Of a stretch of 64,000 nucleotides of DNA, positions 39,245 to 47,021 are shown in pieces. Position 1 is the stretch's first letter. Every line of letters begins with the position of its first letter. The DNA lies in assembly GCF_000315625.1 (NCBI RefSeq), contig NW_005434661.1, positions 422,878 to 486,877 on the forward strand, in the 5' to 3' direction. This DNA comes from Guillardia theta CCMP2712 (taxonomy: Eukaryota > Protista > Cryptophyta). A model generated the notes under the pieces. That model did not search any database. It was not told where the DNA came from and saw only the letters and a program-made list of their open reading frames with translations. The translations under genes were made by a program, and so were the position numbers.

Positions 39245-40725
<1,481 letters not shown>

Positions 40726-41469
40726 CGACCTTGTTCGTTATCACTCTTTGAGTCACCTCTTGTTCGACCGCTCTCAACACCCTCAGTCCTCGATCGCGAG
40801 TGTAAGCGACTTGACTGAGAGTTGCGCAGCAGTGCGCTCGGATATATCCTGTGAGGCGGGCCAGGCGTGTGAAGGTGCATGCAAGGCTTCCACAGTCTCG
40901 AGGGGTAGTGAAAGGTGCTGGACCTGGAAGGGGGTGGGGTAGAGGAGCATCATGGGGGTGGAGGTTTGAATTGGGGGAATACGAGACCTTCTCATCGGGG
41001 AATATGCAGGAGAGAGGTGGGGTAGGGGTAGAACATTAGAGTTGAATAAGGGGTGGTTGTGGTAAAGTATGGGGTAGGACAAAGGAGGGGTAGTGTAAGG
41101 ACGACCAAAGGTAGTAGGGGCGGGTAGAAATTGAATTCGAAACGTTGGAGGTGCCCTGCGGGACATGAAGGAAGCGAAGGCAGCGGAGAGAGAGGGGGGG
41201 AGAGAGAAGGAAGAGAAGAGGGATAGAGGGAGATACAGGAGAAGATTGAAACAGGGAGGCAGGGAAAGAGCTACAGGAAAGGAGGGGAATAAACAGGAGG
41301 AGAGATGAGAAGAGAACGTAGGTGAGGTATGTTACATATGCAGGCAGATTAAGAAAGCCGAAGGAAAGACGCAGTGACTAGACAGAGAGAGAAAAGGACA
41401 ACAGAGGAGAGTGAAACATCCTGATCCTTGCTTTGAAGGTTGTGTCGTCGCCCTAGGCGATTCTTCGAG

Positions 41470-44400
41470 ATGTTCAGACACTTCCCTGAGCTCGGACAAG
41501 CTGCTGTCAACTTCCTCTCGCCCATCGCCAAGAGCGTTGCGAGCCCTCTGCGTCACTCTCCGAATCCTGGCAGCAGCACGCCCGCAAGCTGCGTCAAGGC
41601 ACAGCAGTCTCATGTGGGGTCGACTCCGAAAGGAGTTCCTGACCGAGACACGCTGGTGAAGGTGACGTTTCAAGCCATCCACGAGGATTCGCCGCAAGAC
41701 GCTTCCATGTACATCACCGGGTCGCTCCCGTCCCTGGGCTCTTGGGACCTCAAACGTGCGAGGAAGATGGCGAGAGGACAGGGAGGCACCTGGTGCCTGG
41801 CGATCTACATCCCCGAGAAAGCCGAATTCCTGTACCAGTACCTTCTGTTGCAGGACACATCCGGTCCGGACGAAGATCCTGTCGTTCTGTGGGAAGGAGG
41901 ATTGGAGCGGAAGTGCAAAGTGAACGACAACCCGAGCCCCTCTCGAAGCATGCTGCTGTCTGACGACACGAGGGGCGAAGGAACCCTGATCGTTGCTGAG
42001 GACTCCAAGCTGATGCCTTCCCCTCCTCCTCAGCAGCTTGAGTTTGTCAGCAACGAGGCGATCCCAGACCTGACAGCATCGGAGAAAGAGCAGCTGGAAA
42101 CTCTAATGAGAGAGCGAGAGATGTGTCAGAATGAACTGCAAAAGCTCAAAGACATCATCGGCTTTGCTGCTGTTGGAAGCGAGTACCGAGCTCGAGCCTC
42201 GTACCTGCCTGAGACCGGGGCCCTTTACGACACTGTCCGACAAGTTCAAGCATTCATGCGCTTGCAAGCAGAACAAATTAGGCAAGAGGAGAAGAAGATA
42301 CAGGCAAGTCCTGAGGGAGGAAAAACGGAAGGGCAGGAAAAGCTGCGCATGGAGTTGGAGGAAAGCGAACGAGAACGAGTGGAGGCAGCGAGCAGGTACG
42401 AGACACAGATGCTGGAGCTGAAGGAATACTACCAATCCATCATCGGGAAGCTTGATGCCGAGCAGGATGGACGAGCAGCGGAGCGCGAGCAGCAGGAGCA
42501 GAGCAAGCTGATGCTTCAGAGTTCTGTTCGGGTGGTGGCAGGAAACCTGGACAGGGTGAAGCAAGACTTGGGAGGGTTGAGGGAGGCAGCAGAAGAGCTG
42601 AGAAACTTCCTACCCAACTTGAACTCCCTGCAGTCAATGATGACGAATCGAGTGCAGGAGGAGACAGGAAAGTTGAAAGAGGAGGCCTCGTGCTTGAGCG
42701 AGCGACTCGCAGGAGAGACGAAGGAGAGGAAGCGTCTGCACAACCTGGTGCTGGACCTCAAAGGAAATATCCGCGTCTTCTGCCGAGCTCGACCAGCTAG
42801 GTCTAGCTCTCTTGCTCCTCCCATAGTCTCCTACCCCGCTCCAAACGAGCTTCTGGTTGAAGCAGGAGGAAAGTCGCAGACGTTCAGGTAATGCAGGAGG
42901 AGAGGGAGGAGGAGGAGGAGAGGTTGTTGTTGTTCTTGTTGTTGTTGTTGTTGGAGGAGGAGGAGGAGGAGAGAGAGAGAGAGGAGGAGAGGTTGTTGTT
43001 GTTGTTGTTGTTCTTGTTGTTCTTGTTGTTCTTGTTGGAGGAGGAGGAGACTCAAGACACTGATCTTGCGACAGTTACGATGCAACCTTCGGGCCTCAAG
43101 CTCAGCAAGATGAGATCTTTCGGGAGGCGCAACCGCTTGTGGTCTCTGTACTCGATGGCTATCACGTCTGCATCCTCGCATACGGTCAGACGGGCTCTGG
43201 GAAGACACACACGATGCAAGGCACTGCCTCCTCCCCCGGCGTCAACACTAGAGCACTGGGCGAACTATTTGCGCTGGCTGCCGAGCGAGCAAAGGAGCAT
43301 GACTTCAAGATCAAGATCAGCCTCCTGGAGATCTATAACGAGACCATCCGCGATTTGCTCGAGCCCCTCGACGAAAAGGGTGAGAGGAGGAGGAGGAGGA
43401 GGAGGAGGAGGAGGAGGAGGAGGAGGAGGAGGAGGAGCTTACGTCTCTCTATCAGGGGAGGAAAAGAAGCTCGATGTAAAACTTGGACAAGACGGAGGAA
43501 CTTGCGTGCCCGGCGTCTTGACGAGCGAGGTGGAGAGCATGGAAGAAGTGATGCAGGCGCTGCAACGAGGAGAGCAGAACAGAAGCGTCGCAGGGACTGA
43601 CATGAACGAGCACTCGTCTCGCAGCCACATGGTGTTGACCGTCTACACGCAGGTGAGAGGCGAGGGGAGGGAAGGAAGGCTGCGAGGCTGACGAGACTGC
43701 AGGGAACGAGCAAGGCGACCGGGACCCGCAGCTTCGGCAAACTTCACCTGATCGACCTGGCGGGTTCAGAGAGGCTGCGCCGAACATGCGCAGAGGGCGA
43801 GCGACTGAAAGAAGCGCAAAACATTAACAAGTCGTTGAGCGCGCTGGGCGACTGCATGCAGAGTCTAGTGGCGAAGGTGAGGGAGGAGGAGCGAGAGCGA
43901 GGGAGGAACTGATGAGAAGGCAGTCGAAGCACGTGCCGTACAGGAACTCAAAGTTGACCTTCCTGCTGCAAGACTCTCTCGGAGGCGACGCCAAGGCTCT
44001 CATGTTTGTCTGCATCAGCTCTGAGGAGGTTGTTTGTCTCTCCTCCTGACCGCCTCCTTGCTTCACTGCAATCTCTCCTTCTTTTCAGCCTTCCTCCTCC
44101 TCTGCTCCTCCTCCTCCTCCTCTGCTCCTCCTCCTGCTGCTCCTCCTCCTGCTGCTCCTCCTCTTCTGCTCCTGCTGCTCCTCCTCTGCTCCTCCTCTTC
44201 TGCTCCTCCTCCTCCTCCTCCTCCTCCTCCTCCTCCTGATCGTCGTCGTCGTCATCATCATTATCATCATCATCATTATCATCATCTTCAATCATCATCC
44301 TCTTTGTCAATGGTTGACCACGACTCCATTCTTTGCCTTCTCTTCCCCCCCCTTCCCCTCTGATCTTCCTGCATCTCCACCTCTTCCTCTCTCCCTTGTT

Positions 44401-45943
44401 GCCTCTCACACCCTCGCACAGGCTGACGCTGGTGAGACCCTCTGCTCGCTCAACTTCGCGTCTCGCGTTAGGAACGTCGTGCTGGGACCTGCCAAGGTGA
44501 GTGGAGGGGAGCAAGGTGAGCATTGAATGGCGAGCTCAGCGGCGAGGTGATGGAGCAAGCGACGTGAAGCTGAGGGAGAGAGAGAGAGAGGTGGAGGCCT
44601 TGCGAGGTACTGAAAACTTTTTCCTCCTCCTGCATCTCCTCCCTCCTGCTCCTCCTCCGCGTGCTGCTGCTGGGCCCCTGACGGAGGTGCAGATGCCAGC
44701 AGGCGAGCAGAGGCCGAGGCAGAGAAGCTGCGAGAGCGACTGGAGGAGAAGGTGGGGGAAGGTGGAGGGATGAGAGGGGGAAGTGAACGCGGATGCAGGC
44801 GATCGCATTGGAGGCATCCGAGAAGGTGAGAAGAAGAGCAGAGAAGAGAAGAGAAGAGAAGAGAAGAGAAGAGAAGAGAAGAGAAGAGAAGAGAAGAGAA
44901 GAGTGAAGGGAGTGAACAGGCGAGGAAGCAAGCCATGGAGGAACTCTCGACGGCAGAGAAAACTAACAAGGTGAGGGGAGGAACAGCATTGAGGAGAAGT
45001 GACGAGTGGATTCAGAGCTTGGGGTCAAGGCTGCAGGAGAAGGTGGGAGGGAGCGAAGAGGGAGGGAGGAGATGAATCACTTGCAGGAGCTGCTGATCGA
45101 CTCACTCAAGTCCTCCTCTTGCTCGTCGGAGATGCTTGGGGATGAGCAGGGAGAGCGAGACAAGGAGGAAACGAACAAGCTCAACGGATACAAGCTGCTG
45201 AAGGCGAACAGACACGCCACCCTCGCCCACAAGTCTTCACTAACAAGGTCATCCTGTTTATGACCTCTCTTCCTTCCTCTCCTCTCTAGGCTCCTCCACC
45301 ATCTTCAGTCTTCTCCCTCCTGCCGCTCATCATGTTGTCTCAGCGGCCTCCTCTCTCCAAGGGCGACAGTCTCCAGCAATAAGGAGAACGCAGTGCTCTC
45401 TCCCGTCCTCTCTCCCATCCTCTCGCCTCGTCGCCATCCTTCCGAGGTAGAGATCAAGTTCAACAAGGTATGCTCATCTTGTCCTCTCCCTCCACCTTCC
45501 TCTCGGGCTCCTCACAGGACAAAACAGGAAATCTCTCATGAAAAGAGCGAAGACACAAGGCAAAGAAAGCGAGACGCCAGCGCTGACGCGAGGAGAGGAG
45601 CAGACGTGAAGGACGTCAAGGTATCGCTTGACCATCCCCATGCTCTCCCTCTCACCTCAATCGCAGCCTCGTCCCAGCACGGCCCCTGCTCCTCCAACGG
45701 GGATACGCGAGAGGATGAGGACAGGTAGGATAAGGGGGACGAGGCGGGGGAAGGGGAAGGGGAAGGGGAGGAGAAGGGGGGCGGGGAGGAGGAGGTGGGG
45801 GAAGGGAAGGAGGAGGAGAGAGGGAAGAAGTTGACTGCTGTGTAGGATTGTCGTCGAAGCTTGGCAAACCAGCGGAGCGTGTCCCAAGTGTGAAGGCAGA
45901 AGGAAGAGACAAGGGGAGGTACTCGGTAGGTGGCTGGAGATGA
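41470..45943 (+). CDS. Kinesin-14 family motor with N-terminal CBM20 starch-binding domain and coiled coils, multi-exon
   Basis: CBM20 ([41 protein letters not shown]) ~41656-41922; kinesin-14 neck [23 protein letters not shown]; [58 protein letters not shown]; last exon ..RYSVGGWR*. Confidence 0.9.
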
Positions 45944-46012
45944 AGAGGAGGAGCAAGAGAGTGGTATCTATCTGTTTCAGTGAAGCGTTCTTTCCTCATC
46001 TCGTTTCTCACT

Positions 46013-47021
46013 CTAGCTTCCGAAGCCTGTTCTTGGTCTTGCTCGAAAGATCCGTTCCTCCAGTCACGCACGCCTCTCCTCCTCATCATCACCTGACCCA
46101 CTCCCTCCGCCGCGCTCACATCCCAGGACTCCACATGCTCCCTCATCCTCCCACTCTCATCGAATACATGCTTCCTGTAGTCAGATTTCAGCATCCGCCC
46201 CTCCCCAGGACCCCTGAACCCTCCTCCTCCGCCGCCTCCTCCTCCTCCTCCTCCTCTGCTGCTCCTCTGCTCCTCCTCCTCTGCTCCTCCTGCTCTGCTC
46301 CTCCTCCTGCTGCTGCTGCTGCTCCTCCTCCTCCTCCTCTTACACGCGCCACGGCCACGCGAGGACAGGGCGCCAGGGGAGGTTGAGCTGCAGCTTGACC
46401 ATGACGCAACTGCGGAAGACGTTGGGGTCGACGGGGTCCTGAGCGAGGGAGAGGAGGCGACAGCGATAGCTGAGCACAAAGAGCCCCAGGTTGCTCAAGT
46501 TGCGCCGAAACCTCTCGCGGCCCCGAAAGCTCGCGAAGGGGTCTGAAAGCGAAGATAAGGGAGAGAAGACAAGCAAACAAGACAAGAACGAACGAACCCG
46601 CAAACAAGCAGTCAGGGTGATAGAGAGAGACGTCGATGTCTCCCGACAAGAAATAGTTCTTCTCATACTCGAGTTGCAACCTCTGAAGAAGATCCTGCCC
46701 GGTCACAACTGCTCCTGCCTCCACCTTGTGTTCTACTTCTACCTCATTTCCTCCTCGTCCCTGAACGAACGCGGCGAGATTACCAAGAGCTTCTGCTCCT
46801 TTCCATGCCAGTCGTAGAGGCAGGCTGACATCGTCCTTGTAGTCCTCGCTTTCAGACTTCATGCTAGCAAGTCGACCTTGAGGGAAGCGCGAGCGAGAGC
46901 GACAAGAGAGAGGAGGAGGAGGAGAGTGACAAGAGAGATGATGATGAGAAGAGCGACAAGAGAGAGGAGGAGGAGGAGGAGAGCGACATGCGCTCAGAAC
47001 TATCAGGACTGATGGCAGCAT
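46013..47021 (-). CDS. SnoaL/NTF2-like (DUF2358-type) protein, probably plastid-targeted, spliced
   Basis: YFLSGDIDVSLYHPDCLFA/DPFASFRGRERFRRNLSNL, LQLNLPWRPVLAWP, HVFDESGRMREHVESWDVSA; hydrophobic N-terminus MLPSVLIVLSAC followed by S/R/P-rich segment. Confidence 0.75.

Follow-up and report, generated by a model that had tools for sequence, protein, structure and literature searches.

A kinesin-14 with a CBM20 tail in Guillardia theta and its cryptophyte and red-algal relatives

Why should a microtubule motor carry a starch-binding module, and what could this module hold in a cell that keeps its starch in another compartment? The question is raised by a gene on the forward strand of a 64,000-nucleotide stretch of nuclear DNA from the cryptophyte Guillardia theta CCMP2712 (scaffold JH992977.1; this whole stretch is the window, and all positions are counted within it). 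From 41470 to 45467 the gene encodes a CBM20 domain, a helical stalk, a kinesin-14 motor and a further tail. CBM20 is the classical raw-starch- and glycogen-binding module, kinesin-14s are minus-end motors, and kinesins are known to reach their cargo through protein or lipid adaptors. The reading that we favour, and to which we give a little less than an even chance, is a minus-end kinesin-14 with a retained but altered glucan-binding tail that is regulated with the cell cycle.

CBM20 domain, stalk and motor in one gene

The fusion is certain, because a single exon encodes the CBM20 domain, stalk and neck together with residues 1-82 of the GenBank protein GUITHDRAFT_66467. The open reading frame (ORF) runs from 41440 to 42891 on the forward strand; its first ATG is at 41470, and 36 nt 5′ of this ATG an in-frame TGA occurs at 41434. 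Exon 1 (41470-42887, aa 1-473), defined by the ORF list, its translation and a GT donor at 42888, encodes in order a disordered Ser/Thr-Pro N-terminus, the CBM20 domain, a helical stalk of about 230 residues and the kinesin-14 neck. Its product shows 86% identity to P0001, a protein from a Hanusia phi transcript, across 100% of that protein. A preliminary description of the window had placed the domain, the coiled coil and the neck in this intron-free ORF and had held the fusion to be independent of its splice model; both statements stand, as all parts lie in exon 1 within one uninterrupted ORF.

The CBM20 domain (41656-41937, forward strand) covers a Pfam envelope of aa 63-156 and a beta-sandwich of aa 62-166 in a model by AlphaFold2 (AF2). 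Pfam CBM_20 (PF00686), with a curated cutoff of 23.3 bits, matched the whole exon at 43.4 bits (E 3.1e-11) and the isolated domain at 47.8 bits. The AF2 model of the domain has a predicted local distance difference test score (pLDDT) of 84. In a Foldseek search of the PDB with this model, the top 50 matches listed were all CBM20 domains or CBM20-bearing amylolytic enzymes, with template modelling (TM) scores of 0.63-0.75 and E 2e-6, and included beta-amylase, STBD1, cyclodextrin glycosyltransferase (CGTase), GDE5 and glucoamylase. Moreover, a profile of 16 family CBM20s matched the starch-binding domain of A. niger glucoamylase (1ac0) with E 3.3e-8, and also CGTases and the CBM20 of human STBD1 (8x8k). 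Profile score and fold thus agree with the CBM20-like domain that had been claimed from the letters. NCBIfam returned no match for this protein, as expected for a eukaryotic one.

The helical stalk (42073-42768, aa 202-433) was delimited by AF2 secondary structure, with pLDDT of 82-94 over aa 291-430. A disordered linker separates the beta-sandwich from three helices (202-234, 251-278 and 285-433) in the whole-tail model, the last of them unbroken and running into the neck. The stalk carries family-conserved motifs, including SYLPxxGxLYDTVR, and is presumed to be a dimerising coiled coil on the strength of the model. The neck lies at aa 420-442, directly upstream of the motor, which is C-terminal to the stalk; neck and neck-motor junction (42715-42795) are invariant in 14 of 14 aligned relatives and match Pfam Microtub_bd (PF16796), and the earlier assignment of a kinesin-14 neck to the same ORF is confirmed.

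The motor domain is complete and identical to the GenBank model P0016. It spans 43075-44496 on the forward strand in exons 2 (43075-43379), 3 (43456-43652), 4 (43703-43876), 5 (43924-44028) and 6 (44422-44496), and Pfam Kinesin (PF00225) was found in each piece of exons 2-5. The P-loop GQTGSGKT (aa 510), switch I SSRSH (aa 628) and switch II DLAGSE (aa 658) are all intact, as the preliminary description had stated. The nearest solved motors are KIFC3 (5wde, 312 bits) and KCBP (3h4s, 293 bits), followed by Kar3, Ncd chimeras and KIFC1, and kinesin-14 structures outscore kinesin-2 OSM-3 and kinesin-1 in this comparison with solved structures. These matches assign the motor to the KIFC3/KCBP type of kinesin-14.

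In GenBank, the annotation of this gene is confined to its motor part. The model GUITHDRAFT_66467 (377 aa, 42641-44524) is 100% identical to this part, begins at a Met within exon 1 and ends inside intron 6, so that the CBM20 domain, the C-terminal tail and the greater part of the stalk are missing from it. One might take this annotation as a sign that an adjacent CBM20 gene and a kinesin gene have been misread as one. However, the shared exon described above speaks against two genes, and both domains occur together in proteins derived from transcripts, one from Hanusia and others from two MMETSP organisms, and in more than 10 independent environmental ORFs. With a single-exon ORF and transcript-derived homologues that have both domains, the artefact was rejected for coding potential, and we find it scarcely credible. 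A published table of carbohydrate-active enzymes (CAZymes) counts 17 CBM20 proteins in G. theta (PMC6260743). Since GUITHDRAFT_66467 is truncated, published CAZyme counts of this organism would omit the CBM20 of this gene.

The binding site and its ligand

If the tail has kept the fold of CBM20, has it kept the ligand? Binding residues were numbered by alignment to A. niger glucoamylase. W92 (LGSWD) corresponds to W543 of site 1 and W108 (GTW) to W563 of site 2, both invariant in 14-16 relatives, and W141 (VLWEGG) corresponds to W590 of site 1 and is nearly invariant (at least 90% of relatives). The aromatic pair of site 1 is thereby kept, and the three residues are the conserved tryptophans to which the preliminary description had drawn attention. 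Surface tryptophans are usually retained for ligand stacking. Because the stacking tryptophans have been held fixed in two old paralogue clades of cryptophytes, they argue that a ligand of sugar type has been retained while its polar contacts have changed.

Use of CBM20 as a targeting module on a non-hydrolase is shared with STBD1/genethonin-1, laforin and GPCPD1/GDE5, and the G. theta domain matches the folds of STBD1 (8x8k) and GDE5 (2z0b) with TM 0.65-0.75. In these proteins the module sits on an autophagy receptor, a phosphatase or a phosphodiesterase, and in none of them on a cytoskeletal motor. Unlike these proteins, G. theta has Gln for the canonical Lys of site 1.

Several points weigh against a glucan-binding tail. 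The site-1 Lys (K578) is replaced by Q123 (FLYQY), which is invariant across the cryptophyte members, and the site-1 Asn (N595) is replaced by Glu (LER) in every one of them. The site-2 tyrosines are absent, with Y527 aligned to Gln and Y556 falling in a deletion. A caveat had been entered earlier about the Gln of FLYQY and about ER in place of NR, and it proved accurate by alignment to K578 and N595. The Lys equivalent to K578 is required for binding in laforin. Plastid-bearing cryptophytes are not known to have a cytosolic glucan store, and a 2026 preprint makes the case that starch metabolism was lost from the host cytosol. In addition, a shorter isoform initiating downstream may be made without the CBM20 domain.

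Many of these points would suit a domain that no longer binds glucan. After starch was confined to another compartment, the CBM20 may have been repurposed as a protein- or microtubule-binding tail of a mitotic spindle kinesin-14, perhaps by analogy with the ATP-independent tail site of Ncd/KIFC1. Besides the family-wide changes from Lys to Gln and from Asn to Glu and the lost tyrosines, a conserved basic patch (KRARKM) adjoins W92 and lies near a basic Ser/Thr-Pro N-terminus of the kind typical of kinesin-14 tails, a KEN box and Ser/Thr-Pro sites would suggest a mitotic role, and cytosolic starch is not known in cryptophytes. However, the tryptophans of site 1 and of site 2 are invariant or nearly so over two deep clades, a signature of sugar stacking that goes beyond the fold, and Gln and Glu are still able to hydrogen-bond sugar hydroxyls. 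We regard a repurposed tail as possible though on the unlikely side, and retain the altered glucan-binding tail as the preferred reading.

Compartment and cell-cycle motifs

Cryptophyte starch lies in the periplastidial compartment, which nucleus-encoded proteins enter only with a signal peptide followed by a transit-like peptide. Our signal-peptide calls rest on Kyte-Doolittle hydropathy and ORF inspection. They found no signal peptide in the G. theta N-terminus (maximum 9-residue mean 1.44), in agreement with the preliminary description, and none in the genuine N-termini of homologues, which all have a maximum hydropathy of 2 or less, including the transcript-derived MADDGG..., MDGTPG... and MLSPTGK.... 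The Hanusia transcript protein initiates at the same Met as the G. theta protein, and the first 52 residues of the two are identical. Within the 743-bp intergenic gap upstream (40727-41469) there is no signal-peptide-like ORF. Since no signal peptide appears in the protein, in the upstream DNA or in homologous transcripts, the motor very probably stays in the host cytosol or on the spindle. It should be two membranes away from periplastidial starch, and direct handling of granules there should be topologically blocked.

A targeting exon that has been missed, which the preliminary description had named as the alternative to a cytosolic glucan cargo, would reverse this conclusion, and the motor would then move starch granules inside the periplastidial compartment along microtubules of nucleomorph-encoded tubulin. 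Starch is present in that compartment, which derives from the red-algal cytosol, and red algae have a PLAT-CBM20-kinesin; cryptophyte nucleomorphs do encode tubulins. Other CBM20 proteins of G. theta bear signal peptides, namely 8 of the 17 annotated (PMC6260743). However, neither the G. theta N-terminus nor those of 14 of the 15 homologues have a hydrophobic leader, and the transcript-derived ones among them begin at the same or an equivalent Met. The one exception is P0027, whose Leu-rich beginning resembles read-through of an intron and cuts into strand 1 of its CBM20. The in-frame stop at 41434, the gap without a leader and the shared start in Hanusia point the same way. Moreover, we know of no report of microtubules in the periplastidial compartment. 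A missed exon is unlikely on these grounds, and a periplastidial motor very improbable.

Motifs at both ends of the protein bear on its regulation. The disordered N-terminal region (41470-41646, aa 1-59, pLDDT <50) has five Ser/Thr-Pro sites, and a 12-residue N-terminal motif (compare GFLGQAVNLLQSP) is common to both cryptophyte clades and is found in P0023, P0029 and P0030. Behind the motor, the predicted tail of exons 7-12 (44540-45467) includes a second stretch of charged residues, probably helical, and is rich in Ser-Pro at its end. A KEN box (SNKENAV; 45381-45389 on the forward strand, aa 911-913) is a candidate degron for the anaphase-promoting complex/cyclosome (APC/C). The KEN tripeptide recurs in the otherwise divergent tails of five cryptophyte lineages (G. 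theta, P0026, P0112, P0031 and P0018) and of both Galdieria species, while chance would produce it in 1-9% of trials per tail when tails are shuffled. KEN boxes are APC/C degrons, and KIFC1 is controlled by CDK1 and APC/C. Because the KEN box is conserved and Ser/Thr-Pro sites are present, these motifs suggest that abundance and activity of the motor are tied to the cell cycle.

Cell-cycle motifs on a cytosolic protein also fit a sensor. The CBM20 domain might take up soluble malto-oligosaccharides from degraded periplastidial starch, and its occupancy might switch the motor, for example by relief of an autoinhibitory contact between tail and motor, and division, or the placement of organelles, would in this way depend on carbon status. 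Glycogen sensing by the CBM48 of the beta subunit of AMPK offers an analogy. An aromatic platform that is kept while polar contacts are altered would fit binding of lower affinity that is reversible. In addition, G. theta has GH14 and GH77 proteins without signal peptides (PMC6260743), which would permit cytosolic maltose metabolism. However, this proposal is purely inferential and its autoinhibitory contact is hypothetical, and we think it rather improbable.

The remaining features of the locus concern the gene model and its surroundings. The model has 12 exons and 939 aa up to 45467, and all of its 11 introns (42-393 nt) are GT-AG. Splice junctions 1-5 match the GenBank model P0016 exactly, and junctions 1-2 match P0001, the protein of a Hanusia phi transcript; beyond them P0001 continues into intron 3. 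Exon 7 (44540-44606) was placed by tblastn alignment to the tails of P0026, P0027 and P0028. Exons 8 (44693-44751), 9 (44799-44825), 10 (44920-44970), 11 (45087-45247) and 12 (45290-45467) were placed tentatively, by frame, splice sites and loose similarity. All exons lie on the forward strand. A candidate last exon (45518-45541, forward strand) follows a phase-0 AG acceptor and reads DKTGNLS with a stop after 7 codons. Public sequencing runs guessed to be RNA contain 0.2-0.56 of the words of 41300-46900.

Upstream lies an annotated Methyltransf_5 (RsmH-like) gene (39579-40726, forward strand), and downstream an annotated DUF2358 gene (46341-46863, reverse strand). The unannotated 1.8 kb between the GenBank kinesin stop and the DUF2358 gene contain the kinesin tail exons. 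Introns 42888-43074, 43380-43455, 44029-44421 and 44826-44919 consist of simple purine-rich or triplet repeats of the types (GAG/GAGGAG)n, (GTT)n, (CTC/CTG)n and (GAGAA)n. These repeats give long spurious ORFs on both strands, such as 42891-43691 (forward) and 43948-44523 (reverse).

Relatives in cryptophytes and red algae

Is the G. theta gene an isolated fusion? Word-index searches found CBM20-kinesin-14 proteins in Hanusia phi (two paralogues), Teleaulax amphioxeia and Baffinella frigidus / CCMP2293, as a fragment in Rhodomonas salina, and also in two MMETSP transcriptomes and many marine metagenome contigs. An exhaustive profile search of 1.84 billion representative proteins gave 31 matches below 1e-30. 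A feature search of the ESM Atlas showed no large cluster with CBM20 and kinesin, just generic KIFC3 clusters and chlorophyte CBM20 clusters, all <0.9. Full-text literature searches found no description of a CBM20-kinesin architecture. The preliminary description had known of no such protein; this holds for the literature, while the architecture itself is recurrent in cryptophytes and red algae. The family is a conserved, undescribed kinesin-14 group with an unprecedented tail module, and its public entries are unnamed, mislabelled or truncated.

Within the searches some relatives and matches differ in build. P0117 (834 aa; L001 10001-12505 on an 81.7-kb ENA contig), a CBM20-kinesin-14 of clade A, is encoded without introns in a eukaryotic genome that is compact and rich in GC. 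Its neck lies at aa 274, behind a far shorter stalk, and its gene has as neighbours those for Meckelin, a UAA sugar transporter and a 2-oxoacid dehydrogenase E2. The environmental protein P0136 (984 aa), like P0265, P0267 and P0269, has a CBM20 near-identical to that of clade-B kinesins, followed by a long acidic coiled-coil region and no motor, which places the tail module on a non-motor protein too. The clade-B cryptophyte proteins P0112 and P0031 end in GWR. P0134, P0270 and P0271 (2719-2983 aa), from the rock-inhabiting ascomycetes Rachicladosporium and Cryoendolithus, came up in the profile search with 12 tandem CBM20 repeats and are unrelated to kinesins.

The red-algal relatives are longer proteins with the Pfam architecture PLAT-CBM20-coiled coil-kinesin, which align with the cryptophyte profile from CBM20 to neck in one stretch; named members are Galdieria partita GJQ13818.1, a G. 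sulphuraria protein called 'Kinesin-4' and Rhodosorus marinus EP00189_P000776. They share with the cryptophyte proteins the order of CBM20, coiled coil, kinesin-14 motor and coiled-coil tail, and differ from them in an additional N-terminal PLAT/LH2 domain. The CBM20 of Galdieria has the canonical FQYKY and WENGENR, with Lys and Asn-Arg kept, where cryptophyte members have Gln and Glu, and the Galdieria tail shares KEN with cryptophyte tails. The red-algal P0154, P0194 and P0147 have in common a C-terminal motif, K(R/K)(I/V/M)(I/V)YAFGSR(V/L)(E/H)V, that is absent from cryptophyte members.

Do the two groups share one origin? A scenario that we hold only tentatively, and consider less probable than the preferred reading of the G. 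theta protein, is that the family arose in red algae to position and partition granules of cytosolic floridean starch on microtubules and reached cryptophytes by transfer from the endosymbiont or by descent. After starch had become enclosed in the periplastidial compartment, the copies in the host cytosol would have persisted and duplicated, and the changes from Lys to Gln and from Asn to Glu would have adapted them to another ligand of glucan type or to the sensing of carbon status for cell division. In a motor-domain tree of 45 rows, cryptophyte clade A with G. theta (support 98/99), cryptophyte clade B (100/100) and the red-algal PLAT group are strong clades, and the backbone is without resolution. 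In approximately unbiased (AU) tests, neither a single clade of the three groups (p 0.129) nor a clade of A and B (p 0.41) was rejected. The motor tree thus neither shows nor rejects one origin for the cryptophyte and red-algal fusions. With a hidden Markov model of the cryptophyte CBM20, the CBM20s of red-algal kinesins scored 24-45 bits and unrelated CBM20 proteins did at least as well, so that the CBM20 sequences give no specific link between cryptophytes and red algae.

Among known kinesins, the closest in build are those of the KIFC3/KCBP group (kinesin-14B), which likewise have the motor C-terminal to a long coiled-coil stalk and an invariant neck. The tails differ: MyTH4-FERM in KCBP, calponin-homology in KCH and a plain basic tail in others, against CBM20 in G. 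theta. Unlike that group, the G. theta protein continues beyond its motor for about 180 aa, and this extension contains the KEN box. The malectin-domain kinesin-14s (MDKIN) of land plants have a carbohydrate-binding-type domain on a kinesin-14 tail as well. Malectin, however, is a fold unrelated to CBM20 and recognises ligands of the Glc2-N-glycan type.

According to the reading that we favour, the G. theta protein would be a kinesin-14 of the KIFC3/KCBP type that forms homodimers and walks to the minus end, with the CBM20 module, after a disordered Ser/Thr-Pro-rich peptide, as the tail at its cargo end. With no bipartite signal it would act in the host cytosol or on the spindle. Its CBM20 would most probably still bind a ligand of alpha-glucan type with altered affinity or specificity, which could be a glucan of the cytosol, in solution or as particles, or else a cargo decorated with glucan, and its abundance and activity may be coupled to the cell cycle through the KEN box and the Ser/Thr-Pro sites. 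In red algae the motor would most probably tether or gather starch granules on microtubules, since these granules lie in the cytosol there and the canonical binding residues of the CBM20 have been kept. For the present gene the preliminary description had proposed a motor that directly tethers or moves alpha-glucan granules, or cargo tagged with glucan; direct handling of starch granules is plausible for the red-algal relatives, and blocked by topology in G. theta.

If this reading is true, a tail that itself binds starch or glycogen would be a new mode of cargo choice for kinesins. The family is a concrete candidate for holding red-algal cytosolic starch granules and sharing them out at division. 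To our knowledge red algae are without dynein, and because dynein is lacking, a minus-end kinesin would be a natural candidate for such a task. In cryptophytes the domain stands on the wrong side of two membranes, and thus poses the puzzle of what becomes of an ancestral or endosymbiont-era function after compartments have been rearranged.

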